From the sequence record MF360958.1: a stretch of DNA of 64,000 nucleotides. One strand, 5' to 3'. Below are positions 4,681 through 64,000 of the stretch, piece after piece. Below the pieces are notes generated by a model. It was not told where the DNA came from. It ran no database searches and saw only the letters and a program-made list of their open reading frames with translations. Numbering within the stretch: position 1 is the stretch's first letter; the number at the start of each line of letters is the position of its first letter. The position numbers and the translations under genes were made by a program.

Positions 4681-5213
4681 ATGCTGGTTTCCGTATGATC
4701 AATTTCACGAACAAACAAAGGCTGATCGGTAACATAAAATAATAGATTCTTCTGATTCATTTCAGGATCATAACATTTGGTTACAACCATAAGACCATTC
4801 TCTAACGTAATGCCAAGTATAAGAAAATCGCGACAGTTATAGTTGGGGTATGGCGAATAATCAGTGATTGTTTCAGGATCAAAGTTTGTGATATAATCTT
4901 TAATATCTTTTACAAAATCTTCTTTTGAATCCCAATAAGGGCTATTTTCATCCTGAAAATATGTAGAATAAATGGTATCGGCTTCTGATTCTTTTTGATC
5001 ATCATCAATGTTTCTAAGATCGTCTTCGATACCAAGTTCATCTATAACAATGTCGTAACTGTCTTCTTCATCGTAATTTTTGTTATAACCATAACCGTAT
5101 ACGTTAGGATGTTCATCTTCAAGATCAGTAGTATCAACTTCGTTAACATCATCTTCTTGCTCAGCATCTTTCATCATCTTTAGATACTGGCCTAATGTCG
5201 TGTTATCTGCCAT
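4677..5213 (-). CDS. acidic hypothetical protein (late)
   Basis: 178-aa D/E-rich ORF; CATAAATA upstream; N-terminus LGQYLKMMKDAE resembles 36818..37297. Confidence 0.6.
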   Translation of the reverse strand: MADNTTLGQYLKMMKDAEQEDDVNEVDTTDLEDEHPNVYGYGYNKNYDEEDSYDIVIDELGIEDDLRNIDDDQKESEADTIYSTYFQDENSPYWDSKEDFVKDIKDYITNFDPETITDYSPYPNYNCRDFLILGITLENGLMVVTKCYDPEMNQKNLLFYVTDQPLFVREIDHTETSI

Positions 5214-5305
5214 ATTATATTCTCCATGTCATTTATTGTATTTATGCTTGAAAAGAGAATAATAATTTGTTAGGTTACGTAGAAGTCTCAAAATAAGGTA
5301 ATTCT

Positions 5306-46555: not shown

Positions 46556-46581
46556 CTTAAACGACAATAGGAGAAGAAACG

Positions 46582-47253
46582 ATGAGCTATATTGAAGATA
46601 AAATTAATGAAGATAAATCAGGAGTGGTGTCTGCTGGCTCCCAAGAGGCTATGAAAGTTATTAAAAACGGTCTTCTGGCGGTTATGGCAACTATTGCTAC
46701 AACTATCCTTGGTGTTCTGTTTGCATCACATTTTGGAATTGTTATTTCAGGTTGGGTAGGTGCGCTCATTTTTCTTGCAGTTATGGTCGGAATGATTTTT
46801 CTAATCAGTGCAGCGGCCAATACACCTTTTGGTCTACCTCTGCTTTTAACATTTGGTTTCCTTCAAGGTATTTTCCTTATGGGATTCATTACGCAATTCA
46901 CAGTAACATCTCTACTTATTGCTACTGGAACAACGTTGGGTATCACAGCGGCTTGTATGTTTTTAGCTCTCAGCGGTAAAGTTGATTCTTCAAAATGGGG
47001 GCCTTATCTTCTAATTGTTCTTGTTGCTGCAATTATCGGTATTGTTATTAATATCTTCCTTGCATCAACTATGCTTTCTTTGATGCTTTCTATGGCTATT
47101 ATCTTTATCATGGGCGGACTTATCGTCTATGAAACACAACAAGCAGTAAATAATCCTCATGATAGTTATATTCATTTTGCGTTAGGTCTGTATCTATCAA
47201 TGATCAATATCTTCATCCATACACTTAACATTCTTGGTATTATGGATGAGTAG
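46582..47253 (+). CDS. Bax inhibitor-1/YccA family membrane protein
   Basis: Seven hydrophobic segments; GLIVYETQQ...ALGLYLSMINIFIHTLNIL. Confidence 0.85.
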   Translation: MSYIEDKINEDKSGVVSAGSQEAMKVIKNGLLAVMATIATTILGVLFASHFGIVISGWVGALIFLAVMVGMIFLISAAANTPFGLPLLLTFGFLQGIFLMGFITQFTVTSLLIATGTTLGITAACMFLALSGKVDSSKWGPYLLIVLVAAIIGIVINIFLASTMLSLMLSMAIIFIMGGLIVYETQQAVNNPHDSYIHFALGLYLSMINIFIHTLNILGIMDE

Positions 47254-47256
47254 TTT

Positions 47257-47282
47257 TAAGGGGCTTAGCAGCCCCTTAAATT
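47257..47282 (+). terminator. intrinsic terminator-like hairpin
   Basis: TTAAGGGGCT-TAGC-AGCCCCTTAA. Confidence 0.65.
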
Positions 47283-47329
47283 GTTATTGATTGTTGTATT
47301 GAAAGTTGTTATAATAGATTTATAAATTA

Positions 47330-48439
47330 ATGGAGATTGTCATGAGTAATAAAACGACCAAATATGATAAGCGTTGTGAAAATCTTAAAGAAAAGATGAG
47401 TGGTTTTGTAAATCCCATTATTGATTATCGCTTTGATCCATGGCGTGATCTCACACGTAGTGCTTTTGGTGGTATCATCCGTGATATGGTTGCATTTTTC
47501 GTTGCTGAAAACTATGGTGGAAATGTCAATTTCTATCGTGGTTATCATGTTCCTAGTAAATTTACTATTCAATGGTTTGATGAATTTCTCGAAGATCAAG
47601 TAGGTTATTCAACCATTAAAGATTTTTATTTCAGGAACATCGATACCTTTAAAAAGCAAGTCGAGGATATTCAAATCGATAATCCTGAATCCGAAAATGC
47701 GGTTGTTGTATATTCTCAAACATACAGAGGTTTCATTCGTTCTGATAATCATGGTATTATCACTATTGGTCCAGAAGAATATGCTACCAAGTTTGATTAC
47801 TTCATGAGTGAAGAACTTACAAAATATGCGATTGCAAAGTGCATTCTTCCAGAAGGTTACTATGATGATGAATATTCGATGAAAGATGATATGATCATCG
47901 TTAAGCCGAAGCGTTCTGAACTTTATAAGAAGTCAGAAACGTATCTTGATTTTGATGATTAATTACGGATGAACATGACAGAATCCATTACTATTGAAGC
48001 GAAAAATAAAAAACACCAATCCGATATCTTGGGATATTTCAACGATATCGGTGAGTGCTTTCCTCAATTCAATCATATGTTTGAGTGCTCGCTTGATTAT
48101 CGAAATCATCCGTATACGCCCAAAAAGCTATGTTATCATCCAGTACATATTTCATTTAATATCTGTGCTGATTATGAATTGGTTCGACTTCTTCATAATA
48201 GTGTAAAGTATGTATCTCAACAAAACGGCACTAGGCTCTATTACGATGAGGAAGAAATTGATTGGGTTTACCCTATTAGCACTGTTGGGCGCGATAAAAA
48301 TGATCTACATGTCGAGGTTTTAAAAATATCACCAACTATTAGTCTTGTAGAAAATAATGAAGTTATAGATGGAAATCACAGAGTACGACTTGCAAAAGAA
48401 AAAAGATTTAGAATCAATATATGCTTATGTAGTATATGA
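47330..48439 (+). CDS. two hypothetical proteins (47330..47962; 47969..48439 with ParB/Srx-like IDGNHR)
   Basis: ORF track; VIDGNHRV motif. Confidence 0.5.
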
Positions 48440-48534
48440 AAAGTATTTTTTTTTCACCATTTTTAGTATTTTTTTAACACTTGCATAAATATGATTACCG
48501 TGTTACGGTATTAAACACAATGAAGGAATTAACA

Positions 48535-48669
48535 ATGAATAGCAATACTATGAACAACAATGTAAACACTTCAATCAACGAAATGAATATTTCTGTTGAT
48601 CACAATATTGCTATGCATAATGATCATATTAATAATGATATTGATATGTCATGGAGGGTTTTGATCTGA
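48535..48669 (+). CDS. attenuator leader peptide 1 (44 aa; 12 Asn, 6 Ile, 5 Met, 4 Asp, 3 His)
   Basis: MNSNTMNNNVNTSINEMNISVDHNIAMHNDHINNDIDMSWRVLI*, with an AAGGA RBS. Confidence 0.8.
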   Translation: MNSNTMNNNVNTSINEMNISVDHNIAMHNDHINNDIDMSWRVLI

Positions 48670-48729
48670 ATTTTTGGTAAATGCAACCAAGAGTCAATAT
48701 CAAAACCCTTCCAAACGGAAGGGTTTTTT
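48653..48729 (+). promoter_or_regulatory. attenuator 1: antiterminator/terminator switch
   Basis: GGAGGGTTTTGAT (48653-65) pairs with ATCAAAACCCTTC (48699-711), 13 bp, competing with terminator AAAACCCTTCC-AAAC-GGAAGGGTTTTTT (48702-29). Confidence 0.85.
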
Positions 48730-48753
48730 AGTTTATAGAGATTAAAAATTATA

Positions 48754-48831
48754 GGAACTGTAACTCAACTGGTAGAGTACCGGCCTGTCTAGTCGGAAGT
48801 TTTGGGGGTTCGAATCCCCTCAGTTCCGCCA
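48754..48831 (+). tRNA. tRNA-Asp(GUC)
   Basis: GGAACTG/CAGTTCC acceptor, loop CTGTCTA, G73, CCA. Confidence 0.9.
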
Positions 48832-48842
48832 AACAATACAAT

Positions 48843-48918
48843 GGTACTCATAGCTTAGTGACTAAAGCACTCGGTTGTGACCCGAGTAGACGTAGGTTTG
48901 AATCCTACTGAGTACCCC
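48843..48918 (+). tRNA. tRNA-His(GUG)
   Basis: G-1:C73, GTACTCA/TGAGTAC, loop TTGTGAC; CCA incomplete (CCT). Confidence 0.85.
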
Positions 48919-48936
48919 TCTAAATACTTAAAATGT

Positions 48937-49013
48937 GGCAAGGTAGTTCAGTTGGCAAGAACGCATCACTCATAATGATGAGGTCGGGAGTTCAAATCTC
49001 CCCCTTGCCACCA
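48937..49013 (+). tRNA. tRNA-Met/Ile2(CAU)
   Basis: GGCAAGG/CCTTGCC, loop CTCATAA, ACCA. Confidence 0.9.
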
Positions 49014-49063
49014 ACAAACAAAAAAGATATAATATAGTCAATACAAATTGAGGTTGATTAAGT

Positions 49064-49504
49064 ATGAACGATTGGGTGACACATCAAACACATGATGAAC
49101 CAAAAGATCTAGCACCGGATCAAATTATTGAAACAACATGGCCTAAGAATTTTAAGCCAGAATTAAAAGGTGATAATAAAACACAATATATTTCAGTATT
49201 CCGTTTAATTTGGCTTCCGGGTATTGAATATCGTGTTGTAAAAGATAAAGACGGTATTGGTTATTGTAACCATGAAGGTCTTAAACAATCAACACAGTAT
49301 GTTGCAACACAACAATGTGTTATTGGTGGAGAGCGAGCTTTGCAATTTAGTTCAAAGCCCGAATATGTAAAACCGTCATTGATTGCTCCCTATAAATGGG
49401 ACAATGGAGAAAATAACGGGCGCGTTGATGCGCCTCAAAATAAAATCAAACCCGGAGATTGTAAAGATTCAATTCTCCGAGTTTGGTGGAGCGAAGAAGT
49501 TTAA
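49064..49504 (+). CDS. hypothetical protein
   Basis: 146-aa ORF with GAGG RBS inside the tRNA operon. Confidence 0.6.
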   Translation: MNDWVTHQTHDEPKDLAPDQIIETTWPKNFKPELKGDNKTQYISVFRLIWLPGIEYRVVKDKDGIGYCNHEGLKQSTQYVATQQCVIGGERALQFSSKPEYVKPSLIAPYKWDNGENNGRVDAPQNKIKPGDCKDSILRVWWSEEV

Positions 49505-49507
49505 TAC

Positions 49508-49584
<77 letters not shown>

Positions 49585-49607
49585 AATTAAAAATTATAGG
49601 AAAAATT

Positions 49608-49781
49608 ATGGTTTACAATAGAGAACAAGCTTACGAAGAACTTTATGATCCAGATAGTGAACAACGTTCTGATATGGCTCATGAGCTTATTGAGCACATG
49701 GAATCCATCAAGCGAGCATATAGAAGTGGTGATATGGATGAGCTTGAAGACCTCATTGAAGAATGGGGTGGAAATTCTTAA
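49608..49781 (+). CDS. small hypothetical protein (57 aa, not in the ORF track)
   Basis: MVYNREQAYEELYDPDSEQRSDMAHELIEH...WGGNS*, with AGGA RBS. Confidence 0.55.
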   Translation: MVYNREQAYEELYDPDSEQRSDMAHELIEHMESIKRAYRSGDMDELEDLIEEWGGNS

Positions 49782-50005
49782 CGGTTAAACTTATGAAAAT
49801 TAAACATATATGCATTTTTCATAAATGGAAAACATATACAGATCATTTACCAATTGTTTATAAACAATGTAAAAAATGTAATAGGATAAAAATAGTTTCT
49901 ATTACTCCTATGGGACATCGACCATACGATTTAAAAGTACATATAGGAAAATGATCGTTAACTGTTGACAAAGGATAAATAAAACGTTAAGATAATATAA
50001 ACAGT

Positions 50006-50081
50006 TGCAGGGTAGAGCAGTTGGTAGCTCATCGGGTTCATAACCCGAAGGTCGGCGGTTCGAGTCCGCCCCCTGCCTCCA
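50006..50081 (+). tRNA. initiator tRNA-fMet(CAU)
   Basis: 1:72 mismatch, three G-C pairs in the anticodon stem (TCGGG/CCCGA), loop TTCATAA, CCA. Confidence 0.9.
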
Positions 50082-50088
50082 AATTAAA

Positions 50089-50178
50089 GGATGTCGCTGT
50101 AGTGATAGTGTTCCGGGCACATGGGGACGACTACGCCGGTTGTAAGCCGGTCCTCCAAGGAATCCTAGGCATCCACCA
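50089..50178 (+). ncRNA. non-canonical tRNA-like RNA with GUA (Tyr) anticodon-like loop
   Basis: GGATGTC/GGCATCC+ACCA; GCCGG-TTGTAAG-CCGGT; no canonical T-arm. Confidence 0.5.
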
Positions 50179-50188
50179 TTTAAACAAT

Positions 50189-50275
50189 GGTCTGAATAGC
50201 GCGTAAGTCTTGCAATGGGTGATCCTCATTCTAGCGTCGAAAAGGTATCCGGGGAAGGGCCGGAAGGACAAGCCA
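50189..50275 (+). ncRNA. candidate structured RNA ending in GCCA
   Basis: GC-rich island; hairpins AATG...CATT and TCCGG/CCGGA; 3' CCA; sits at tRNA-like spacing in the operon. Confidence 0.4.
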
Positions 50276-50289
50276 AACACTAATAGAGG

Positions 50290-50505
50290 TTGTTTAAAAT
50301 GTCAAAATATTTTATTATTGAAAATAAAGTAAACAATGCATATTTTTCCCACTATAAATTTTCAGATAGTGGTGAAGAAAAAACAGAAGTTTTTGTGAAA
50401 GGTAAAACCCTTGCTCTAAAACTTGAGTATGATAAAGCTCAAAAACTTAGTGAAGAATTAAATCAAGTAGAAAATATTGATACACAGGTTGTGAACGCAC
50501 TTTAG
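50290..50505 (+). CDS. hypothetical protein
   Basis: 71-aa ORF with GAGG RBS. Confidence 0.55.
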   Translation: MFKMSKYFIIENKVNNAYFSHYKFSDSGEEKTEVFVKGKTLALKLEYDKAQKLSEELNQVENIDTQVVNAL

Positions 50506-50514
50506 CTAAGTGTA

Positions 50515-50589
50515 GTCAGCAGCTAGTTTAACTGGGTAGAACGTCCGCCATAGGTGGAAGATACAAGTTCGAATCTTGTACTGTTGACA
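50515..50589 (+). pseudogene. degenerate tRNA (shortened anticodon loop CATAG, no CCA)
   Basis: GTCAGCA/TGTTGAC acceptor, D-arm, TACAAG-TTCGAAT-CTTGTA T-arm; TCCGC/GTGGA stem with a 5-nt loop. Confidence 0.6.
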
Positions 50590-50728
50590 TTTTTAAAAAG
50601 CATAGATGGATCAGGGTTAAAATCCTTGAGTGGTAATGTGAGAAATCACATTCCGGCTGCGGTCGTGAGCCCAATACGCTCATACATTTTTGAAACTGTC
50701 TGTGCTTTTTAATTTTGAAAAGAATAAT

Positions 50729-50850
50729 TGGGTAGTAGCTCAGATGGTAGAAGCAGCGCGCTGTGGGCCTTATGGGTAATATCAGGTTCAACTCCTGAAA
50801 GGCCAAAAGTAACGCGCAGGTCGCAGGTTCGAGCCCTGCCTACCCAGCCA
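50729..50850 (+). tRNA. tRNA-Asn(GUU) with a 45-nt insertion (50765-50809) in the anticodon
   Basis: TGGGTAG/CTACCCA, U1-A72 and G73 (Asn-type), canonical D/T arms and CCA. Removing 50765-50809 gives GCGCG-CTGTTAA-CGCGC. Confidence 0.75.
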
Positions 50851-50853
50851 TAC

Positions 50854-50883
50854 AAAAAGCCACCTACATAGGTGGCTTTTTTA
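50854..50883 (+). terminator. terminator ending tRNA operon 1
   Basis: AAAAAGCCACCT-ACAT-AGGTGGCTTTTTT. Confidence 0.85.
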
Positions 50884-53765
50884 TTGCACACATTAGCCCA
50901 CGCCTGTATAATGTTATCTATGACTCCAAAGAAAAGACAGAGAAATTTACAGTTAGATAAAAGTTTCCGAATTGGGCTAACCGTTCCTTATGATTTCGTT
51001 GTCCAAGTATCATCAGCTCGCCATTATACAATGAAAGAATATTCTGAACTAATACATAATGAAAAACATTATCGAATTCAAAAACATATAGATAGATTAA
51101 AATTTAGATTATACCGTGAATTTAGTTTACTTTTTAAACAATTAAAACTCAATTATTATTGGTATGATGTTGATATTATCTATGGAGATGAAATATCTTC
51201 TATGAATAAATTGACACATCTTACAAATTTTAAATATGATTTTCACTATTTAATTACTTTTAAATTTTCTCAACATGATTTGAATCGTTTAAAATTAGTC
51301 CATCAAGATTTTTATGACGTACTTATTGATGACACTAGGGACGCTATAAAGTTTCAGGATATGTTTGGATATTTGATTAAAAATTAGAGTAAAATTATGA
51401 CAAAGTACAGAAAACATAACCATAACAGACATAATGAATTTAATGTATCAATAACTAATATAGGGTTCAATCAACGTATCGGTTATAATGAAGATGAAGT
51501 GTTTAAAGAAAACTTTTCATTTGGATTAGAATTTGCTAAAAATAAAAACAGAGAAATAGCTGAACGCTGTGAAAGACTTGTAAGATTTCAACTTTATAAA
51601 GAGTTTATCAAACGTTTACAAGACAATAATATTAAAAGGTATTGGTTTGATATTACTTCAAGACATTCATATATGACAACTTATCTTTATATGGATGATA
51701 ATGATTTTGTAACATTAACTATATTTATCACATTTCAGATAACATTAAAAATTAATCAACATGATACTAATCGTTTGAAGTTATCTGATCCTGAATTTTA
51801 TGATTTGTTATGGGAACAGAACAGAATTCGTAATACAATAACACAAGAGTATCCTTCTTTAGACGTTCTTATAGAAAATAGAAAAACAAAATCATGACCA
51901 ATAAAAGAAGAAACAGATTATATTTTGAAAATGAATTCAACATTTCTCTTTATCAATTGTATGATGTTGTACAGATTGATTCTAAAAAGAGTTATAAAAG
52001 TATAAAAGACATTAGACATCATAATGATAAAATTCTTTATGATGTGTTAAACGATGTAAAGAAAAATTTATATCGTAAAATGATTAAACGATTTAAAGAA
52101 TCTGGTTTAAAACATTATTGGATTGATATAACTATGAATGCCAGTGATCAAGGTATTCATGAAGAATTACAAACAAAGAACAAACATCACCAACAAGAAA
52201 TGCATATAGTAACGTTTGATTTTTTTTATATTATTCATTTTAGAATTTCTCAACAAGATATTAATCGGTTAAAAATAACAGATGAAGAATTTTTTGATAT
52301 GTTAAATGATGAAAATGTAGATTTGTTTGAAAAAATATTCTGTTACACTATATCTAATTGATAAGTGAATTTTTATGACTGAAAAAAGAAGAGTAAACGT
52401 TTTATATAATAAATCGCATCGTATTGATATTGACCCAATTGGTTTTTATATTTTTACGGATCATCTCAACGATGACTGCTTAACATATAGTGGTGTCAAA
52501 CAATATAATGATAATCTTCTTGATCGTGTCTATAAAAATGTGAAGCGAGTATGTTACCGATATTTTATTACTAAGTTTAGAGAGAATAATATAAAAACAT
52601 ATTGGATGAATGTAAGTATTAGTATTGTTTATAATGATGTTGAACGAGATAGTTATAACAGAAGTGGTATGTATCCATATATATTAGAAGCTCAAATATA
52701 TATTTTCACAACACAACATGATTTTAATCGTTTAAAATTAACGGACTATTCATTATGTAATATTCTTAACAATTTAGATACGGCTGAACTTAATGATAAA
52801 AGTATAGAATCAATAAAAATCGAGTTATAAACTATGACACATCAAAGAAAAACTGATCCTAATTTATCCAAAGAGTTTCTAATTAGACCATTACCGCTTA
52901 TATTTTATTACTATTATGCTGATAATAGTGTAGTAAATTATGAAAACTTAAAAGATGACATATTCAATACTGAGCGTATGGTTAAAAGAAAATGCTATCG
53001 ATATTTCATTTATAAATTTAAAGAAAATGGAATAAAATCATATTGGATGAATGTAAGTATTAATTCAACATGTCATAATCTTTCCAGTGATTTTATAGAT
53101 TCAATAGTAGATATTGGTACAATAAGTACAATAAGTGAGCGTAAAGGTATTATCTATGATTGCGAGTTAAACATCAGAATAACTGTTTTATTCTCACAAC
53201 ATGGACTTAATCGTTTAAAAATATGCAATAACCAGCTTCATGACATCATCAATAACAAACATAATTCTCATATTAATAAACTACTTAACGAATGGTTTAC
53301 AATAAGTAAGAGTCAATTATGACTGAGCACAGAAAGAATAATCTTCAGAAAACTAATAATTATAACTTGGAATTCTTAATAGTAGAAGATATTGTATTTT
53401 ATAATGAATCAAGATTATATTGGGGAGAAGATTATGAAAAAGTTGTTCAATCAAATAAGGATATGTTTGAGTCAATTGATCAACGTGTTAAAAACACAGT
53501 TTACAAACAGATAGGTAAATTATTTTTCAATAATATTAGAAAAAGCAATTATTGGTTTTATGTTTCGTTAGAGATTATAAAAGGTCCGTTATCAAATATA
53601 TATGATAATAATCCTAATATAATAGTACGATGTTATTTAGCATTTACAGTATATTTATACATTTCAGATCATGGTATGAAAAAATTAAAACTTATAGATC
53701 AAATTATAGGTAATATCATTGAAGATGAAAATGGTGATAGACTTGAATATATTTTAGGTTTTTAG
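50872..53765 (+). CDS. tandem array of six paralogous ~150-170-aa proteins (50872, 51397, 51894, 52375, 52834, 53319)
   Basis: All have an MTxxR(K/R) start (first member likely at 50920) and share K.(L/C)YR.F...F, YW.(D/N)(I/V) and a C-terminal (S/T/N)(Q/D)(H/Q)(D/G).(N/K)(R/K)LK(L/I). Confidence 0.8.
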
Positions 53766-53901
53766 TATTGTATTAGTAACTATAATCAAATGGTTATTAT
53801 ATGACAATTAATAGAAAAACGTTTCATGTTTATAAACTAAGTTCACCTTATGAATATGAAAACAATTATTTAAGAATTTTCTAATACTACGATAGATACA
53901 T

Positions 53902-55452
53902 ATGACATATGAATTTTGGAAACGTGTAAGAGATTACGCACAACGTAAAATGAAACAAGAATATGGCCATGGTGATCTAAAATGTCCCAACTGTAAACGT
54001 TGGACTTATGAACTTGGTGGTTGCGTAACGATGTATCAATATGATAAACATAATGATATAATGGTTTGTAAACAATGTGGTTATGAAAGTATGTGGTTTA
54101 TGGGAGCAGCAGTACCCATATCTAACAACAATTATGAGTATCCTACTAAAGATACCGATCCTCATTAAAACTGGATGGATAAATTATGAAACTACTAGAT
54201 AAAATGAAAAACATTTTAAAAATTCATGATAGAAAATATGACTACTATGTTCATTGTCCATGTTGCCATCGTATCGAATCTTCCAAATCTATTATGATTA
54301 AAAATGTTGCACGATGCTCCAACTGTGGTGCATTTTTTGATATACATTTTGCTAAAAGATTCATTAAAGATGACTATGGTGATATGACCGATGCTCGCAA
54401 AAGGGTATTAGAAAGAAAAAGAAATTTGAAAAAGAATTGGGGTCATGGTCATAATGTTAGAAAATGAAAGAATGAAACATACCCATAATAGTATTACTAA
54501 AATGCATACAACTTTATGCTTGATGCATTCAGAGATATTAGAGTATGATCATTATGATCATTATGATATAGTTACTATATTTACAGATCAAAAACAAATC
54601 TCTAAACAATCTGAAATTTTAGATGAATGTTTAGAATCATTTTTCAGAACAAACTATATTATTTCAATTATGGATACTAAATCAGAAACATTATTCCATA
54701 ATGAAATTCCTGAAACGTTCAGTGATATTAGTTTAATATACAACGAACCAATAACTATATACATTGCAGATATCTTTCCTGATAAAAAGACTTTTCATTT
54801 GTATAAATTACAGAATTATGAGATATTTGAAAAGCGATACAAACGTTATTTTAACTAATTGGATCTAATGACTTACTAGAAATTTGAATAAAATATATGC
54901 TTAAATCTAACTGTCCTATAGAAAATATCAATACTAGTACCCAAGTAAGTATTTCATTAATATATATTAATGAAATATTAAATTTTAAATATCATTGGAC
55001 CTATATTTTAAACGTATTTAAAGATGACACTTTTATATCAGAACAATCTCGAATAATAGATGAATGTTGTGGATTGGCAAAAATTAAACGATTTGATACT
55101 TAATAATTATTATTCTTGACAATAGTGTTAACAATCTTTATAATTGTCTATAGAATTTATTAAAAGAGGTTGTAAAATGCTTGGTAAATATTCACCTACT
55201 ATTTCAGGATGGTATAGCAAAGATCAAAATTGGTTTGAAAAGAATGGTGGTGGTTTTGATAATGGTTATAATCCAAACAGCGATCTAGACAATGATGGCT
55301 ATGACAGCTATGGTTACACAAGCTCAGATTCTTTTGAAGATTATGATCGTGAAGGATTTTACGAAAGAGATTATTGGTCCAATAAAGGTGAAGAACGTTA
55401 CGAACAAATTGAAAGAATCTGGTGGCGTAAGCCTTTGCCTTATGAAAAATAA
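53902..55452 (+). CDS. five small hypothetical proteins (53902 and 54186 zinc-ribbon, 54445, 54897, 55144)
   Basis: CPNC/CKQC and CPCC/CSNC motifs in the first two. Confidence 0.5.
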
Positions 55453-55467
55453 CTTTTCAAAAAGGTA

Positions 55468-55596
55468 TTGACAGAAAGACTATAAATAACTATACTGGAA
55501 CACAGTTAAACAAATTAAACCAAAAACTTGATCTGTATTCGCCACAAGCGAATACTACCGCAAGGTACGATGGAGAGTGGTTCACATCGACTTTTT
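55468..55596 (+). ncRNA. promoter plus candidate three-hairpin sRNA
   Basis: TTGACA-N17-TATACT (55468-96) with embedded TATAAATA; hairpins GTATTCGC/GCGAATAC, TACC-GCAA-GGTA and CGATG/CATCG, then a T-tract. Confidence 0.55.
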
Positions 55597-55693
55597 AAAA
55601 ATTTACGGTTTTTAAAGTATTTTTTGAAAACTGTATAAATAAAATCAACAAGTCATTATTGACAAAAAACAATTAACGATTAGAATAATTATT

Positions 55694-55825
55694 ATGATTA
55701 ACGCAAGTACTACAAACATCGCTAAAAGTATGATCGGTAAAGCTGCCAAAGTTAGCTTCAAAGGTGGCTTTGTGTGGGCGTTTAGCTTTAAAAAAGCGAG
55801 CGGACAGCGAGGGTTTTTGGAATAG
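55694..55825 (+). CDS. attenuator leader peptide 2 (43 aa; 6 Lys, 6 Ala, 5 Ser-AGY, 5 Gly, 5 Phe, 2 Val, 1 Trp); not in the ORF track
   Basis: MINASTTNIAKSMIGKAAKVSFKGGFVWAFSFKKASGQRGFLE*; ATG lies 7 nt after the -10 of TTGACA-N16-TAGAAT (55659-86). Confidence 0.8.
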   Translation: MINASTTNIAKSMIGKAAKVSFKGGFVWAFSFKKASGQRGFLE

Positions 55826-55890
55826 TGAATGAAGTGTAAACCAGCATTCAAAATAATTCCAGAAACCCTTCCAAGTCGGAAGGGTTTTTT
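55809..55890 (+). promoter_or_regulatory. attenuator 2: antiterminator/terminator switch
   Basis: GAGGGTTTTTGGAAT (55809-23) pairs with ATTCCAGAAACCCTT (55856-70), competing with AAACCCTTCC-AAGTC-GGAAGGGTTTTTT (55863-90). Confidence 0.85.
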
Positions 55891-55922
55891 AGTTTAGGAA
55901 TAATAAAATTTAGAGAATATTT

Positions 55923-55998
55923 GGGGATATAACTCAACTAGTAGAGTACATGGCTTTTAACCATGCTGTTCAGGGTGCAAGTCCTTGTATCCCCACCA
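55923..55998 (+). tRNA. tRNA-Lys(UUU)
   Basis: GGGGATA/TATCCCC, loop CTTTTAA, ACCA. Confidence 0.9.
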
Positions 55999-56004
55999 AA
56001 TTTA

Positions 56005-56083
56005 GGAAGGATAGCTCTAATTTGCGTAGAGCAGAGGATTGAAAATTCTCGTGTTGGGAGTTCGAATCTCTCTCTCCTTCCAC
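56005..56083 (+). tRNA. tRNA-Phe(GAA)
   Basis: GGAAGGA/TCCTTCC, loop TTGAAAA, ACCA. Confidence 0.9.
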
Positions 56084-56263
56084 CAAATTTAAAAGGATTA
56101 AAAATATGAGTAATAAAGAAAATATCGCATATAGTGTAGAAAATGAAGGTCTGAAAAGAAGATGAAAAATGGGATAATGGTGAGCTAAGAAATGATGAAC
56201 GCTTTGTGAAAGTTGCTGATAAACAAACCGAAGAAGCTCTTGAACAAGCATTGAAAAAATAAA

Positions 56264-56340
56264 GCCGGATTAGCTTAATTGGTAAAGCGGCGGACTCCAA
56301 ACCCGCGTCTAACGTGGTTCGAAACCATGATCCGGTGCCA
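56264..56340 (+). tRNA. tRNA-Trp(CCA)
   Basis: GCCGGAT/ATCCGGT, loop CTCCAAA, G73, CCA. Confidence 0.9.
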
Positions 56341-56361
56341 AATTTATAAAGGTGATTAACA

Positions 56362-56679
56362 TTGAAACGACTTTATCATATGTATCGAAATTTAAATTCA
56401 AAGTGTTGATCCGTTAAACATAGAGGAAAAGTTATAGGTCATCATGATTCTATTGTTTTGAAAAATTGCGAATTTAGAGTTAGTGAAAAAGGTCGTCAAA
56501 GAGTTTTAAAAGAAAAAGTTAAAAATGTTCATGCTTATATTGCAGCACAAACACATGAAGAATTAGATGATGCCATTGATAAATGTAACAAAGTAGAGCT
56601 TACTTATAATCCATATAAATATTCAACATTTGTGATTAAGGAAACAGGAGAACCAATTTATCATTGTGATCCATATTAG
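56362..56679 (+). pseudogene. phage hypothetical gene with in-frame TGA (56407-09)
   Basis: KRLYHMYRNLNSKC*SVKHRGKVIGH...CEFRVSEKGRQRVLKEKVKNVHAYI; same frame on both sides of the TGA. Confidence 0.6.
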
Positions 56680-56751
56680 CTAAAGATGATGGTAAAATCT
56701 ATAAAATTCGTTATTGACATAAAACAAATTATTTATTATAATATTTAAATA

Positions 56752-58422
56752 GTGATCAAGAGGAATTTAGTAATGTATAAAATTATGACCAAAGACGAAC
56801 GTTATGTGATTATTGTGGAAGAAAAAAGTGCAGTAAATGAATACTATGTTTTTGAGACTCAAGATCTCATCGTAGAAGACAATATGGAAAAAGAAGCATC
56901 AGATTTTTATAATAAAATGCTGAAAGAAGATCAGAAACCATCTATTTATATGAGTGTTAAATGGGATGGTTGTGCAAATATGGATGCGAAAGAAGATAAT
57001 GTGTTGATTCATTTTTGTGAACAATCGCATATCGATTCATTTTATGGTATGCTGTCAACATGTTACAAAGATGCTGAAAAGCGTTTTGATTTTAACAATA
57101 TGTTCAACTAATAGTGGAGTAAATAGTGATGAAAGTTAAAGCGATTGATACAGAAACAAATCGTAGTGATCGTCCCGGAAAGCCTGATGGTATTACGGAA
57201 GGACACGTTTACGAAGTTGTTCAAATCAAATCTTTTTTCCATAATAATCGTAAGATGCAGATGGATCAGTACCGGATTTATAATGATTATGGAAAACTGA
57301 CTAATCATTCACAATACCGTTTTGAAGTTGTTGATGATTCAAAACCTGAACCGTTGGTTAAGTCTTTCAACAGGCTTACTAGTGATGTAAGGGTTGAAAA
57401 TCGAGAACTCAAAGAGAAAAATGAAAAGCTGGAAAATTTGGTTGAGTACTATAGAAAACTTTTAAGTGTTGAATAAAAAGGTTGATTTTTAATAGTAATT
57501 ATTGTTATAATAAACATTGTTGAGATATAGGAGATTTAGTATGAATATGAATGGTCTATTTAAATTGGTTGCTATTACAATGACTTTCGTATTTGTAGTT
57601 GGTTGTAAGTATGATGCTCATGCCTTTTCGGCTGAAGTTATTGAAATTGGTGATTGTGTGTATGATGGCCCTTATACATGTCGGGTTAAAGTCAAGCATG
57701 AACAAACGAAACTTGATGATGAACATAAGACAGACGATGACATTATGTATGTTGAAGTTTGGGGTACGGTCATGAAAGGGCAAACCATCTATCGTCTGTG
57801 CTGGTTTGAATCATCTGAAAAAGAAAAAAGAATGTGTTTTGTTCCATTCAGAACATCCGTACCAAATGGTTATGAACTTCGCGATTAGGAGATTTAAAAT
57901 GAGTAATAAATCGAAATATATTGAAGATCTTGAAAGCATTCGTGATCAACTTCGTCAAGAGCGTGAAGAACATTTTAAAAACATGTCTGATCCACGTAAA
58001 GGAAAAGATAAAGAATGGACTGAAGTTGAAAAGTCCAATCAACGTTATCATGATGCTGTAGAACAATCATATGCAGAGTATTATAAAAGATATGGCGATC
58101 CTGATAACGAACAACGGTAAAATATAAGATAATTAAAGGTGGTTAGCTCAGTTGGGAGAGCGCTGGTTTTACATACCGGAGGCCACAGGTTCAAACCCTG
58201 TACCACCTACCAGTATATGTATGAAAAATAATGATTGATCTTATTAAAAGCTTAATCAAAGATTGGAAGAATAAAAGATTGTATAGTGATCCAAGAAAAC
58301 TTCACTATGCACAGTTAAGAGAACATAATAAAGAAAGGGGTGTTGAGCATCCTTGTGATTGGGACTATACTGTTCCATCATTAGATGATATGATTAGAGA
58401 GTATCGTGACAAAGGTTATTAA
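56752..58422 (+). CDS. hypothetical proteins interleaved with tRNAs (56752, 57126, 57517, ~57900..58120, 58231)
   Basis: ORF track with GGAG RBSs. Confidence 0.55.
58137..58212 (+). tRNA. tRNA-Val(UAC)
   Basis: AGGTGGT/ACCACCT, loop TTTACAT, ACCA. Confidence 0.9.
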
Positions 58423-58558
58423 AGATTATGTTTAATACGAAAATAAAAGAAAATTTTTCATTTGCTTTTCTTTGCACGGTATTGATTATTTTTATAGGTT
58501 TTCCTTAACAGCATATGGTTTATGTTTTCTTTATTAGGAATTAAACAAAACAATTTTT

Positions 58559-58650
58559 AGTGGGGTGGTCGAGCGGTCTAAGACGCTGGATTGCTAATCC
58601 AGTGATCCGTTGTTACGGGTCCGAGGGTTCGAATCCCTCTCCCACTGCCA
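58559..58650 (+). tRNA. tRNA-Ser(GCU)
   Basis: AGTGGGG/TCCCACT, loop TTGCTAA, long variable arm, GCCA. Confidence 0.9.
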
Positions 58651-59174
58651 GTTTAAAATTAAGGCAAAATAGTATGGAACAGCGTTTTAAAAGTTTTGGG
58701 TACAAATTAAAAATAAAACTTAAACAATATCGTTGTAAAACATTATTGGGAACAGAGTTTTCCAGACAATAATCGAGATTTTTACTGTGTTAAATGTGGT
58801 AAAGATTATTGTTTACCTTTTTAAAAATTAAGTAAAGACAAACTAATATATGTTTAAAAATCAAAATATTATATTTCAAACAAAAAATAATATTTCTGTT
58901 AAAGAAATAAAAGAGATATTAAATACGTTTCGAAACGAAAATAAAACTTCATTAGTAATGGAGTATAAATATAAAAATCTTATATGGTATGTAAATATAA
59001 CCGGAAATTTTGAAAAGAAATCTTATAATGACTTTATATCAAATTTAGAAAATGTTACAGAAACTATTCTAAAAATTAATTAAAGCTTTAATAGCGGCTC
59101 ATGATGGTCTTTGGTTTCGCCCGGTATCCATTTCCCACGCCCCTATTACAGTCAGGGACCGGGTGTAAACAATA

Positions 59175-59260
59175 TGGCTCAGTGGCGATGCAGTTGTATC
59201 CTTAATGCGCGAAGGGTATGATCAAGTGGTTGAGGGTTCGATTCCTTCCTGAGCCTTCCA
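59175..59260 (+). ncRNA. aberrant tRNA-like RNA (UGC in an 8-nt loop; Ala-like?)
   Basis: GGCTCAG/CTGAGCC acceptor, GAGGG-TTCGATT-CCTTC T-arm, CCA; long central stem TATCCTT/AAGGGTA with loop AATGCGCG; no G3:U70. Confidence 0.5.
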
Positions 59261-59266
59261 AACAAT

Positions 59267-59342
59267 GCGGGATTGGTGTTTAATGGTAGCATGTCGGACT
59301 TCCAATTCGAAGGTCGGGGTTCGAACCCCCGATCCCGCACCA
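59267..59342 (+). tRNA. tRNA-Gly(UCC)
   Basis: GCGGGAT/ATCCCGC, loop CTTCCAA, ACCA. Confidence 0.9.
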
Positions 59343-59397
59343 GATTATAAATACGAATGTAAATAAAAAAATTAATAATGAAAATTTAGGCCATGTA

Positions 59398-59958
59398 ATG
59401 TTTGAAGAAAAAGTGTTACTTTTGGATAAAACAGGATTTCCTAATCGTTGGATCATGCCGGATGATGCGGCAGTAATTATAACCAATGGTCGGGTTGCAT
59501 GGTCTTTTGGTGATACTCTTACAACTCTCCATGGTGGCTATAATCGTATAAGCTACACTCAATCCACTCTTGATATTCCAAGCGTTATCGCTCTGGATGG
59601 AGTTATGAAAATGCGAGGTAAGTGTCCTCCATTAAGTAATGATTCTTTATTTTTGAGGGATCAGCACCTATGCTTATATTGTGGTAAAGGATTTACTAAA
59701 AGTAAATTAACACGTGACCATATTTTCCCTCAATCTCGTGGTGGTAAATCTACTTGGGACAATTTGGCGACTGCATGTTTCCGTTGCAACAATCATAAGA
59801 AAAACAATTGCACACCTGAAGAAGCAGGTATGGAATTGATTGCTTTGCCGTATAAACCTAATATTGCAGAATACCTTATCCTTAAAGCACAAGGTAGGAT
59901 TCTCGAAGATCAAATGAACTTTTTAAAAGGTCATGTAAGCAATTTAATATTGGATTAA
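59398..59958 (+). CDS. HNH endonuclease (McrA-like)
   Basis: RDQHLCLYCG...LTRDHIFPQSRGGKSTWDNLATACFRCNNHKK. Confidence 0.9.
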   Translation: MFEEKVLLLDKTGFPNRWIMPDDAAVIITNGRVAWSFGDTLTTLHGGYNRISYTQSTLDIPSVIALDGVMKMRGKCPPLSNDSLFLRDQHLCLYCGKGFTKSKLTRDHIFPQSRGGKSTWDNLATACFRCNNHKKNNCTPEEAGMELIALPYKPNIAEYLILKAQGRILEDQMNFLKGHVSNLILD

Positions 59959-59962
59959 AATT

Positions 59963-60671
59963 ATGAGTCATAAAGAAATCAAAATTTGTTTTATAGTATT
60001 ATGCATACTGGTTTTGATGTGGGGTGGTGGAATGATATTAACAGCGTTTCATTTCTCTACATTTTATTCTGGATTACTAATCATATTTTCAGTTTTTGGT
60101 ATGTGGACATTGGGTGAATATACCTATCGTAGAGTAAGGATTAGGAATAGAAATGATTAAACAACGTAAACATAATTATGTTCATAGTATTCTCAATCAT
60201 GATGAAATTTATAGTATCATTGATCATATTGAAAACATGAATTATAAGACAGAAGAACAAGCATTGTGTTATATTCATGATCAGGTTAAAAAGAACTATC
60301 TTTCTAAGAAGAAATTTAAGTTGTTACTCACGTGGCATTTTGAAAATTAATTTTCAATTTTTATAAATAGTATTAAGAAAATTAATTGAATAATATGGAG
60401 TTAAAAAATAATGACTATTAGAAAACATTTGGATATGATCAATAATATCGAGTCCGAACAACTTAATGAATCTTTCAATAAAGGCGATACTGTTAAAGTA
60501 AAAGATGATGTTAAAAATCCTCAGATCAAAAAGTTTGCAGGAAAACAGGCAAAGGTTCTTAGTACTGAAGATGATGGTAAAACCATTCATGCAAAGGTTA
60601 AAGGTGCTAAACATGGTTCTATGGAATTTAAATCCAGCGAACTAGAAAAATTTGACGAAGAAAATTCTTGA
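59963..60671 (+). CDS. three small hypothetical proteins (59963 membrane, 60153, 60411 late SH3/KOW-like)
   Basis: ORF track; TATAAATA upstream of 60411. Confidence 0.5.
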
Positions 60672-60740
60672 CAATTGAGCATTTTTTCAGTAACATTATA
60701 AATAACATAAACAAAGCAATTAAACATTAAGGTAATTATT

Positions 60741-60854
60741 ATGAACGCTCTAACACGTACATTCACATTAACAATCACAACACGCTCGTCAGAGCGCACG
60801 AGTGAAGTACGCTCCACTGAACGCGAAACAGTAGGAGAACGGAAGGGTGTTTGA
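60741..60854 (+). CDS. attenuator leader peptide 3 (37 aa; 9 Thr, 6 Arg-CGN, 5 Glu, 4 Ser); not in the ORF track
   Basis: MNALTRTFTLTITTRSSERTSEVRSTERETVGERKGV*; AAGG RBS; promoter TTGACA-N17-TAACAT (60668-96) followed by TATAAATA. Confidence 0.85.
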   Translation: MNALTRTFTLTITTRSSERTSEVRSTERETVGERKGV

Positions 60855-60912
60855 ATAATTCAAATATAAGAATGTTCAACAATAAAAACCCTTCCAAATG
60901 GAAGGGTTTTTT
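60841..60912 (+). promoter_or_regulatory. attenuator 3: antiterminator/terminator switch
   Basis: GGAAGGGTGTTT (60841-52) pairs with AAAAACCCTTCC (60884-95), competing with AAAACCCTTCC-AAAT-GGAAGGGTTTTTT. Confidence 0.85.
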
Positions 60913-60935
60913 AGTTTGTGGTTTTAGAAAATTTA

Positions 60936-61026
60936 GGAGAGTTGGCAGAGCGGACGATTGCAGCGGTCTTGAAAACCGCCGAGGGTTTGCAGCCCTCCGT
61001 GGGTTCGAATCCCACACTCTCCGCCA
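60936..61026 (+). tRNA. tRNA-Ser(UGA)
   Basis: GGAGAGT/ACTCTCC, loop CTTGAAA, long variable arm, GCCA. Confidence 0.95.
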
Positions 61027-61033
61027 GAACATT

Positions 61034-61108
61034 GTCCTGTTCGTCTAATGGTTAGGACTCTACCCTTTCACGGTAGCAACAGGGGTTCGAATCCCCTACG
61101 GGACGCCA
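61034..61108 (+). tRNA. tRNA-Glu(UUC)
   Basis: GTCCTGT/ACGGGAC, loop CTTTCAC, GCCA. Confidence 0.95.
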
Positions 61109-61115
61109 ATACAAT

Positions 61116-61187
61116 GCCTCGGTAGTTTAATCGGTAAAACAAATGACTTGTAATCATTAGTCGGTGGATCGTAACCGCCCCGAGGCT
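61116..61187 (+). tRNA. tRNA-Thr(UGU), no encoded CCA
   Basis: GCCTCGG/CCGAGGC, loop CTTGTAA, variant T-loop ATCGTAA. Confidence 0.8.
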
Positions 61188-61219
61188 AGAATATTATAAT
61201 CATAAATACCTTAAAATTA

Positions 61220-61921
61220 ATGAGGTATTTTATGATTAAAAATTATACAAAAAAAGAATTAGAATCAATATTATTAAAATATGGCATGGATAATAATACT
61301 TTTATTGTGAAAAGGGAATTTCCTAATCATATAGATTATATACCATCATATAATTCATGTTGGAGAAATGGAGTAGAAATTAGAAAAGTTAATAAAATTA
61401 TAGATTATAAATTTTACAAAACAAGTCCAAATAAATGTACTAATTGTAGAAAAAATTTAATTTATAAGAAAAGATATAATAAATTTTGTAATAGGTATTG
61501 TTGGATTATATATAATGCTAGATATAATTGTGGTAAAAATTGTTTAAATTGTTCTAAAAGATTTACATCGAAAAGTTCTAATTCAAAATATTGTTCTATT
61601 GAATGTTCAGCAGAGAAAAGATATAAAGATACTATTAATAAATGGTTAAATGGTGAATTAAAGGGGCATACTGGTAAAGCTCTGCAAATTAAACAATTTG
61701 TGAGAAAATATTTATATCAAATAAGAGGAACAAAATGTAGTGAATGTGGATGGGATGAAAAGCATCCAAGAGATAATAGACCTTTAACACAATTTCATCA
61801 TATTGATGGGGATGCATCTAATACAACACCATCAAATCTTAAAATATTATGTCCTAATTGTCATTCAAAAACTGATAGTTATCTTTCAAGAAATAAAAAC
61901 AGTTGTCGTGATAGAAAATAG
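61220..61921 (+). CDS. HNH homing endonuclease (likely start 61232)
   Basis: CxxC repeats (CTNC, FCNRYC, CLNC, YCSIEC) and RGTKCSECG...QFHHIDGD..N....NLKILCPNCHSKT; late CATAAATA upstream. Confidence 0.9.
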   Translation: MRYFMIKNYTKKELESILLKYGMDNNTFIVKREFPNHIDYIPSYNSCWRNGVEIRKVNKIIDYKFYKTSPNKCTNCRKNLIYKKRYNKFCNRYCWIIYNARYNCGKNCLNCSKRFTSKSSNSKYCSIECSAEKRYKDTINKWLNGELKGHTGKALQIKQFVRKYLYQIRGTKCSECGWDEKHPRDNRPLTQFHHIDGDASNTTPSNLKILCPNCHSKTDSYLSRNKNSCRDRK

Positions 61922-61923
61922 TT

Positions 61924-61957
61924 TTAGTCGGCGGATCGAAACCGCCCCGAGGCTCCA
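61924..61957 (+). repeat. duplicated 3' half of tRNA-Thr, with CCA
   Basis: TTAGTCGGCGGATCGAAACCGCCCCGAGGCTCCA versus 61157-87 TTAGTCGGTGGATCGTAACCGCCCCGAGGCT (31 bp, 2 mismatches). Confidence 0.9.
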
Positions 61958-61963
61958 AATAAT

Positions 61964-62012
61964 TCCCCGGTAGCTCAATTGAATAGAGCAACGGTCTACG
62001 AAATCGTAGGTT
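61964..62012 (+). pseudogene. 3'-truncated tRNA-Arg(ACG)
   Basis: TCCCCGG, D-arm, ACGGT-CTACGAA-ATCGT, AGGTT, then AT-rich sequence; no T-arm or acceptor 3' strand seen. Confidence 0.75.
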
Positions 62013-62041
62013 ATATTACCAACAAAATAATAAATATTATT

Positions 62042-63004
62042 ATGAAATACTATACTGTTTATAAAATAAAAAATAAAATCAATGATAAAATTTATATAGG
62101 TTGTCATAAGACTGAAAATCTCGATGATAACTATATGGGATCTGGTATATATTTACGAAGGGCCATAGACAAATATGGTATAGATAATTTTGAAAAACGC
62201 ATTATGTTTGTATATGACAATCCATATGATATGTTTTCAAAGGAGGCAGAAATAGTTACCGAGAGCTTTGTAGAAAGAAAAGATAATTATAATTTAAAAA
62301 TTGGAGGCATGGGTGGATTTGATTATATAAACAGAAATAAATTAGGATTAATTGGATTTTGGAATTATTGGAATAATTTAACCAGTGAACAATTAGAACG
62401 ACATATTCAATTATCAAGACAGGGAGGATTTAAAACATTAAAAGATAGAACAGGCTTGTTTTCAAAAAAATCTATTGAAAATAGAATTTCATCTATTAGA
62501 AAAAATAATGAAAATTGGACTTTTGGCGGAATGAAGCATTCCAAAAAAAGTAAAGAAAAAATGTCTAATAGTGCTAAAAAACGTTTGAAAGATCCTATGA
62601 AACATTCTCAATATGGCACTATGTGGATCTATTCATTAGATGAAAAACGTGCTAAAAAAATAAAAAGAACAGATAATATACCTAATAATTGTATTGTCGG
62701 ACGTAAACCTAAAAAACAAAATAACCATAATAAAAATCCTAAATGTAAAACATGTAGTAATACAACTAGCACATTTAGATCGAGGTATTGTGAAAATTGT
62801 AAAAAACTTAGAAATTATCAAAGAAAAGGATATAATAAAATAGATTTTATATCTAGAAAGCATAATATAATTGAAGGAAGTGTATCAAAAAATAAAGATT
62901 TTATTAAAGAATGTATTTCTAACAATATTCCAAAAAATAATATTTTAAAATTTTTAAATTGTAATAATTCAGGAGGAAATTATAATATTATTAAAAATTT
63001 ATAA
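62042..63004 (+). CDS. GIY-YIG homing endonuclease (Seg-like) with NUMOD3-like motif
   Basis: YTVYKIKNKINDKIYIGCHKTENLDDNYMGSG; MKHSKKSKEKMS; TAAATA upstream. Confidence 0.9.
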   Translation: MKYYTVYKIKNKINDKIYIGCHKTENLDDNYMGSGIYLRRAIDKYGIDNFEKRIMFVYDNPYDMFSKEAEIVTESFVERKDNYNLKIGGMGGFDYINRNKLGLIGFWNYWNNLTSEQLERHIQLSRQGGFKTLKDRTGLFSKKSIENRISSIRKNNENWTFGGMKHSKKSKEKMSNSAKKRLKDPMKHSQYGTMWIYSLDEKRAKKIKRTDNIPNNCIVGRKPKKQNNHNKNPKCKTCSNTTSTFRSRYCENCKKLRNYQRKGYNKIDFISRKHNIIEGSVSKNKDFIKECISNNIPKNNILKFLNCNNSGGNYNIIKNL

Positions 63005-63040
63005 TTTAATATAAAAACCACGATAATTAAATTATAAATA

Positions 63041-63603
63041 TTAACAAAGTTTATCTTTGATTGATTTAATACAAAGAAGTTCTATCTTAGCTTTACTAAT
63101 GCGTACACATTTTTCATAAATTTCTTCTTCGGTTAAACTATAACCTGAAGTTAAATTTTCCGGTTCTAAATCTTTTTCAATCAATTCAGAAAGTTTATCG
63201 CATTCTTCCTTGTTAGGAATATATGAAAATTCTGGCTCATCAAGAAGATCTCTCGCAATGTTCTTCTTAGTAATATATCGTTCAAGATATGTCATACAAA
63301 TTTCCTTAGCCTTTTAATGAAAAATTTATTGAAATATGAAATCTATTTTGCTATAATATAATTATTGTTAAGGAGGTATAGAAAATGTCTGTTGTAAAAG
63401 TACGTAATACTCAAAAATTTCAAAGATGGTTTAAGAAAAACACACCTACTGCCTCAAAAATTATCAATTATGATTACAAAAATAACATTCAGTATGTTAT
63501 CATTGACCTGAATTATTATGGAACAAGCATGGGAAATGAAATTGAAGCTTCTAAAAAAATTAGAACAATTGTTTCTGATTTTAAAGGTAAAAAAGTAAAA
63601 TAA
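63041..63603. CDS. two hypothetical proteins (63041..63295 -, 63385..63603 +)
   Basis: ORF track with RBSs. Confidence 0.5.
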
Positions 63604-63631
63604 CATTTAATTATTAATCAAGGGGTTAAAT

Positions 63632-64000
63632 ATGTCATATCTTATTATTACTAGTATGTTGTGTCTTATTGTTAGTAATATCTTGCTGATTATAGCGATT
63701 ATTAGATTAAATGATAATAAAAAGAATGTGGATACTTTTACTTTTACACATACTTGTACACAACATCCCGTAATAGTTACGGATAAAGATGGAAATGTAT
63801 ATTTCGAAAAACATAATAATACAATAACTAAAGTTGATCCAGATGGATACGAAATTTGGTCTTATGATGGACACACAAATAGAGTTCGAAACATAGAGAT
63901 AGATCAATTCGGTAATGTGTATAGTGTGAGTGATGATGAAACTATTCGTAAAGTAGATTCATGTGGAAATGAACTATGGACCTATATAGTGAGAAATATC
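63632..64000 (+). CDS. membrane-anchored beta-propeller (WD40/PQQ-like) protein, 3'-partial
   Basis: MSYLIITSMLCLIVSNILLIIAII..., then repeats DKDGNVY...KVDPDGYEIWSYDGHTNRV..IEIDQFGNVYSVSDDETIRKVDSCGNELWTY. Confidence 0.7.
   Translation, partial: MSYLIITSMLCLIVSNILLIIAIIRLNDNKKNVDTFTFTHTCTQHPVIVTDKDGNVYFEKHNNTITKVDPDGYEIWSYDGHTNRVRNIEIDQFGNVYSVSDDETIRKVDSCGNELWTYIVRNI

Follow-up and report, generated by a model that had tools for sequence, protein, structure and literature searches.

Ribosome-mediated transcription attenuation is best known from the amino-acid operons, where a short, promoter-proximal ORF rich in regulatory codons precedes an intrinsic terminator, and an antiterminator that shares the 5′ arm of the terminator is blocked when a ribosome reaches the end of the ORF. 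In the multivalent leaders more than one amino acid is sensed (Leu/Val/Ile by the ilvGMEDA leader and Thr/Ile by the thr leader); the trp, his, leu and pheA leaders are further examples. In the pheST operon of E. coli, the pheM leader applies the same principle to a component of the translation apparatus, phenylalanyl-tRNA synthetase, and responds to the level of charged tRNA, but it senses a single amino acid and controls a protein-coding operon. T-box riboswitches also read tRNA status by transcription antitermination and control synthetase and amino-acid genes, but they bind uncharged tRNA directly, without translation, through a specifier loop and a conserved T-box motif. Long tRNA arrays that are dispensable and switched on under translational stress are known in cyanobacteria (the Anabaena trn operon; PMC8421152, PMC10272220); that array is controlled by a protein repressor, TrcR (PMC10272220), and no leader, attenuation or terminator is mentioned in PMC8421152.

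Here, a leader in front of a tRNA cluster of Salicola phage SCTP-2, a 440-kb jumbo phage from an Italian saltern, is compared with these systems. The stretch analyzed (the window) comprises 64,000 nucleotides, bases 248001–312000 of MF360958, and is 29.6% G+C. The record annotates only hypothetical proteins here, and its feature table lists no tRNA for this stretch. As in the ilvGMEDA and thr leaders, more than one amino acid appears to be sensed, but the genes that follow encode tRNAs instead of biosynthetic enzymes, so that the loop would close on the decoding machinery itself. Up to seven codon families are listed, chosen at the level of isoacceptors, there is no obvious 1:2 anti-antiterminator, and the element is viral. 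Weak hits to the Rfam Phe_leader model (RF01859) were obtained for two paralogous leaders, L1 and L3 (31.8 and 29.6 bits, below the cut-off of 55), and none for the leader in question, which is therefore not a member of that family. No T-box hit was found at E ≤ 1 in 46000–64000. No description of leader-peptide or attenuator control of tRNA genes, in phages or in bacterial tRNA arrays, was found in the literature open to searching, which excluded subscription-only papers.

Anatomy of the element upstream of tRNA-Lys

The element (L2) lies on the plus strand and begins with a sigma-70-type promoter at 55659–55686, which consists of TTGACA (55659–55664), a 16-nt spacer and TAGAAT (55681–55686) and matches 11 of 12 consensus positions. 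An ATG follows at 55694, exactly 7 nt after the −10, with no purine-rich Shine-Dalgarno sequence in between. The ORF (55694–55825), annotated only as hypothetical gp351, has 43 codons plus TAG. As the original prediction stated, it contains six Lys codons, all AAA, five Ser codons, all AGY, and six Ala codons; AGT occurs twice and AGC three times, and there are five Phe, five Gly, two Val and one Trp. Of codons 10–37, 21 are Lys, Ser(AGY), Gly, Phe, Val or Trp and five are Ala (26 of 28). The antiterminator consists of 15 pairs between 55809–55823 and 55856–55870 and encloses a small hairpin at 55826–55850, an equivalent of which is present in all four SCTP-2 elements and in Tunturiibacter phage Tunturi_5. 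Its 5′ arm lies in the last five codons and includes the first base of the stop codon, whereas its 3′ arm overlaps the 5′ arm of the terminator by 9 nt. The terminator (55862–55890) is a canonical intrinsic terminator, with a core of CCCTTCC, a 5-nt loop and GGAAGGG in a stem-loop at 55862–55888, and a run of six T at 55885–55890. RNA truncated before the 3′ arm of the terminator folds into the antiterminator at −26.8 kcal/mol, compared with −17.1 kcal/mol for the terminator. The antiterminator is also the minimum-energy fold of the full-length RNA. A hairpin at about 55743–55777 within the ORF does not sequester the antiterminator arm, and no clear anti-antiterminator is present.

The first tRNA gene starts 32 nt after the T-run, which leaves no room for a promoter. 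The proximal tRNAs (55923–56340) are Lys-UUU (55923), Phe-GAA (56004) and Trp-CCA (56264), followed on the same strand by Val-UAC (58137–58212), Ser-GCU (58559–58650) and Gly-UCC (59267–59342). No strong intrinsic terminator lies between the attenuator and tRNA-Gly, although a perfect consensus promoter at 56714, and others, could transcribe Val, Ser and Gly independently. Of 42 codons in the leader, 23 are cognate to this cluster against 25% expected (binomial p = 4e-5). The use of AGY for all five Ser codons, against a background of 35%, gives p of about 0.006, but the six AAA codons are not informative alone because AAA accounts for 84% of Lys codons in this phage. Only two of the five Gly codons (GGA, GGG) are strictly cognate to anticodon UCC; the other three (GGT, GGC) are not.

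The suggestion in the original prediction that the Ala codons correspond to an aberrant tRNA-like RNA with anticodon UGC is not supported. The sequence at 59176–59256 exists but is below threshold (Rfam tRNA 26.4 bits against a cut-off of 29). With U33 in register its anticodon reads GCG, and ARAGORN calls it only at a relaxed threshold and as Arg. It has C3-G70 instead of the G3:U70 identity pair and carries a long variable arm, and is not a credible tRNA-Ala. The six Ala codons are unexplained; some lie in the hairpin at about 55743–55777 and may be structural, although this is speculation.

The original proposal of leaderless initiation is plausible and consistent with the geometry. An alignment of the paralogues indicates that L2 kept the −35 and the 26 nt before the ATG of the L3/L4 5′ region but lost the stretch between them. 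The position at which L3 and L4 carry their Shine-Dalgarno sequence AAGGT now reads TAGAAT, 16 nt from the −35, which fits a derived, leaderless copy. A further promoter lies upstream at 55468, and if transcription starts there, the ORF may be poorly translated and the antiterminator would form by default.

Paralogous leaders and their codon specificity

The terminator core occurs three times in the window and nowhere else, where none is expected by chance, and each copy lies 17–32 nt upstream of the first tRNA of a cluster and is preceded by a short ORF. L1 (48523–48733, plus strand) has a Shine-Dalgarno sequence AAGGA, an ORF at 48535–48669 (Asn 12, Ile 6, Met 5, Asp 4, His 3), an antiterminator formed by 48652–48668 and 48695–48713 and a terminator at 48702–48727; its promoter is unclear. 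It is followed by tRNAs Asp, His, Met, Ile, Met and a tRNA-Asn(GUU) gene interrupted by 45 nt in the anticodon loop. L3 (60668–60916, plus strand) has a promoter at 60668–60696, a Shine-Dalgarno sequence at 60729–60733, an ORF at 60741–60854 (Thr 9, of which seven are ACA, Arg 6, Glu 5, Ser 4), an antiterminator formed by 60841–60852 and 60878–60895 and a terminator at 60884–60911, and is followed by tRNAs Ser-UGA, Glu and Thr. The six Arg codons of L3, four of them CGC, a rare codon in this phage, lie upstream of a 5′ fragment of tRNA-Arg(ACG) at about 61955–62010 that is cut off by an endonuclease-like ORF. A 3′ half was sought as far as 63400 with the intron mode of ARAGORN, and by acceptor-complement and T-arm motif searches reaching 64000, but none was found.

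The next 49 kb of the phage were then examined. A fourth cluster (Leu-UAG, Pro, Leu-GAG, Tyr, Gln) was found with the same kind of terminator and the same promoter and 5′ UTR as L3. Its leader, L4 (positions 5197–5283 of sequence L002, outside the window), was read only after the prediction was made, and carries 13 of 14 consecutive Gln, Tyr, Leu(CTN) and Pro codons.

With the codon usage of long ORFs of the phage as background and conservative wobble rules, own-cluster enrichment gave p = 1e-3, 4e-5, 6e-5 and 3e-4 for L1 to L4, and the 4 × 4 matrix of leaders against clusters is strictly diagonal, with every off-diagonal cell depleted. Among 719 small ORFs in 112 kb, each leader ranks 1st to 5th for its own cluster (L2 ranks 2nd), with an empirical joint probability of at most about 4e-11. 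The choice of isoacceptor follows the local tRNA. Ser is AGY in five of five codons before tRNA-Ser(GCU) but TCN in three of four before tRNA-Ser(UGA), and Leu is CTN in four of four before Leu-UAG and Leu-GAG, although TTA is the commonest Leu codon in the phage.

In all four elements, RNA truncated before the 3′ arm of the terminator folds into the antiterminator, with the 5′ arm in the last codons and overlapping the stop codon (48652–48668 in L1, 55809–55823 in L2, 60841–60852 in L3 and L002 5270–5283 in L4). L4 has a G-C pair where the others have A-U: T is changed to C in the ORF arm, together with A to G and T to C in the two terminator arms. RNAalifold on the four truncated RNAs recovers the antiterminator with two compensatory pairs.

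Occurrence in other phages

No orthologue of L2 itself was found in other genomes, and its own conservation cannot be measured. A blastn search of the L2 region against 50,697 phage records matched only SCTP-2 itself, at three places, and an exact look-up of the L2 peptide returned only SCTP-2. A protein-based search of IMG/VR for relatives with gp336 found none, and exact and relaxed scans of IMG/VR for the terminator motif gave 14 hits without adjacent tRNAs, which are unrelated terminators.

A metagenome scan for the terminator motif, however, identified one contig (L019) with TTGACA-17-TACATT, an ATG 6 nt later, a 23-codon ORF, the same terminator core and then 12 tRNAs. Of its 22 codons, 15 are strictly cognate (p = 7e-5). 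The tRNAs of L019 resemble those of Tunturi_5, a 309-kb phage with an Acidobacteria host, which has three such elements. Two of these match their own cluster and not the other (24 of 36 and 33 of 48 codons, against 10 of 36 and 10 of 48). The third was again predicted before it was read, and has 15 consecutive Leu, Cys, Ser and Tyr codons before tRNAs Leu, Cys, Leu, Leu, Tyr, Leu, Ser, Ser and Ser. L019 lacks Asp and Glu tRNAs and has no Asp or Glu codons, whereas the Tunturi_5 counterpart has both the tRNAs and the codons. A Tunturi-specific motif scan gave one locus with no convincing element.

A sample of 109 IMG/VR loci, chosen only for a T-run 15–40 nt upstream of a common tRNA D-arm sequence, yielded further clear cases in a 424-kb contig (L080, four leaders), a 113-kb contig (L087) and others. 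In this sample, 5 of 23 tested ORFs have p < 0.002. In 15 of 17 candidates the 5′ arm of the terminator pairs with the end of the leader ORF. For 25 arrays in which the nearest ORF was chosen mechanically, the mean own-array z is 2.08 against −0.28 for mismatched pairs, a value reached by none of 20000 permutations. The design appears to be a widespread viral class but is not universal. In the terminal repeat of the related jumbo phage XacN1 there are no terminator-preceded arrays, and the ORFs before its tRNAs are ordinary. In the Rak2-like Erwinia phage Hallingskeid, also a related jumbo phage, the tRNAs are dispersed singly among ORFs, judged from its feature table alone. The T5-like Salmonella phage SE3 has no such element.

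Proposed mechanism and alternatives

The core of the original prediction, a translated leader with an antiterminator/terminator switch tuned to the Lys-Phe-Trp-Val-Ser(GCU)-Gly tRNAs, is supported, and L2 is probably a ribosome-mediated transcription attenuator that senses decoding of the array's own codons, although in the absence of transcript, ribosome-profiling or reporter data every functional step is inferred. In this model, host RNA polymerase starts at the promoter at 55659–55686, at or within a base or two of the AUG, and a ribosome translates the leader. If the listed codons are decoded quickly, the ribosome reaches the stop codon and covers 55809–55823, the terminator folds and transcription stops 32 nt before tRNA-Lys. 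If any of these codons is decoded slowly because the matching charged tRNA is scarce, the ribosome stalls upstream, 55809–55823 is free to pair with 55856–55870, and because this helix is more stable than the terminator, polymerase reads into the tRNA genes. The new tRNAs would relieve the stall, resulting in negative feedback that matches tRNA supply to demand, with any one of several codon families able to trigger read-through. Scarcity could arise from the codon demand of the AT-rich phage in a host that may be GC-rich, from decay of host tRNA during infection or from a tRNA-cleaving host defense. Unlike in the classical trp model, the untranslated default would be read-through.

This default leaves an alternative that is unlikely but survives best, namely that the attenuator reports overall ribosome speed or availability (host shut-off, stringent response, ribosome-targeting stress) and that the codon match only tunes its sensitivity. 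Any failure to translate the leader would turn the operon on, and the leaders mix many codon families instead of carrying long runs of one. However, a general sensor would not need cluster-specific codon sets, and the diagonal matrix, the choice of isoacceptors and the covariation of leader and array content between L019 and Tunturi_5 argue against it. It is more doubtful still that gp351 is an ordinary small protein gene whose hairpin simply ends its transcript, with the tRNAs made by leaky read-through or processing and the composition match incidental. The ORF is annotated as a hypothetical protein and small ORFs abound in this AT-rich genome, but the match recurs at four of four positions in this genome and in other phages, and permutation tests fail to reproduce it. 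The four leader peptides share no sequence similarity except their N-terminal few residues and belong to no Pfam or PHROG family, and the 3′ ends of the ORFs are constrained to mimic the 3′ arm of the terminator in every copy.

A translation-independent switch, in which the structured leader RNA senses tRNA or another ligand directly and the ORF is not translated, would agree with the absence of a Shine-Dalgarno sequence in L2 but is very unlikely. No T-box or other riboswitch hit was found at E ≤ 1 in 46000–64000, the signal is in-frame codon composition bounded by a start and by a stop that sits in the antiterminator arm, and L1, L3, L4 and L087 have good Shine-Dalgarno sequences. Chance resemblance can be all but dismissed, because although any single short ORF can be compositionally odd and a few out-of-frame ORFs score as well against some cluster, the joint probability across the four elements, the two blind predictions and the cross-genome permutation test all disfavor it.

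Perhaps slightly more likely than not, many phage tRNA arrays may be governed by a previously unrecognized class of decoding-capacity sensors, leader peptides that spell out the array's own codon list so that shortage of any listed tRNA switches the whole array on. The shortage could come from codon mismatch with a new host, from loss of host tRNA during infection or from anticodon-nuclease defenses, and phages would gain a demand-driven tRNA supply and an automatic counter-defense. Unmatched codon families, such as Ala in L2 and CGC/CGT Arg in L3 beside the truncated tRNA-Arg(ACG), would then be records of tRNA genes recently lost or broken by homing endonucleases. The leaders could help annotate functional tRNA operons, and even lost tRNAs, in viral genomes, and offer compact, codon-specific sensors for synthetic biology. 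Why phages carry tRNAs, and how their expression is controlled, are open questions, for which the main proposals are codon-usage compensation, host tRNA decay and evasion of tRNA-targeting defenses. A leader peptide that lists the array's own codons would mean that the phage measures decoding directly and responds with the matching tRNAs, and would extend classical attenuation from amino-acid supply to tRNA supply and from cells to viruses.

A fourth tRNA operon and solitary tRNA genes

Outside the window, on L002 (the adjoining stretch of the SCTP-2 genome), a fourth and very clean tRNA operon was found at L002 5124-6646 (MF360958 316124-317646). It consists, in order, of a promoter, a leader, an attenuator and the tRNAs Leu-UAG, Pro, Leu-GAG, Tyr and Gln, with one ORF inside, and is closed by a strong terminator at L002 6618-6646. 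The promoter and 5′ UTR of this operon are nearly identical to those of Leader 3. tRNA-Cys and a third tRNA-Met, at L002 18155 and 20015, stand alone, without a leader or attenuator.

Sequences next to the leaders and tRNA genes

Just upstream of Leader 2, at 55468-55600 of the window, a near-consensus promoter (TTGACA-17-TATACT) is followed by about 100 nt of structured RNA that ends in a hairpin plus T-run (z = -2.4). This segment has no ORF and no Rfam hit, and it may be a small RNA. Downstream of Leader 2, a short gene between tRNA-Phe and tRNA-Trp (56106-56262) appears split by a stop or frameshift, and only a 19-aa piece of it is annotated in the record, as gp352. Six tandem paralogous genes (gp340-345, about 150-170 aa) at 50872-53765 lie between tRNA clusters and share an NRLKL-type motif; the one that was tested has no Pfam family. 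In Tunturi_5 (L024 19040-19064 and 6835-6856) and in its metagenomic relative, contig L019 (260-290), a TTTGACAA(C/G)CGA motif lies about 16-20 nt upstream of several mature tRNA 5′ ends. The geometry is wrong for a sigma-70 promoter of that tRNA, and the motif may be a processing or phage-specific signal.

Degenerate, fragmented and interrupted tRNA genes

At 61116-62010, an HNH endonuclease gene (61220-61921, Pfam HNH) sits between tRNA-Thr and a second, better-paired copy of the tRNA-Thr 3′ end that carries CCA (61924-61953). Directly after this copy comes the 5′ two-thirds of a tRNA-Arg(ACG) (about 61955-62010, anticodon loop CTACGAA), which is cut off by a 320-codon ORF (62042-63004) that looks GIY-YIG-like by eye but has no Pfam hit. 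The tRNA-like sequence at 59176-59256 is degenerate, with a good acceptor and T arm, a long variable arm, and an 8-nt or mispaired anticodon loop. Its anticodon reads GCG if U33 is in register, and it scores below the Rfam threshold.

Two further unusual genes are found at 50517-50588 and 50729-50850. The first is an aberrant tRNA-like gene, called Tyr with anticodon AUA, which has C at position 33 and a weak anticodon stem; Leader 1 contains no Tyr codon. The second, a tRNA-Asn(GUU) gene, carries a 45-nt insertion between anticodon positions 36 and 37 and is followed by a strong terminator at 50857-50883. It is called by the intron mode of ARAGORN and scores 46 bits against the Rfam tRNA model; the insertion is too short for a group I intron. 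If it is processed, this tRNA would supply the 12 Asn codons of Leader 1.
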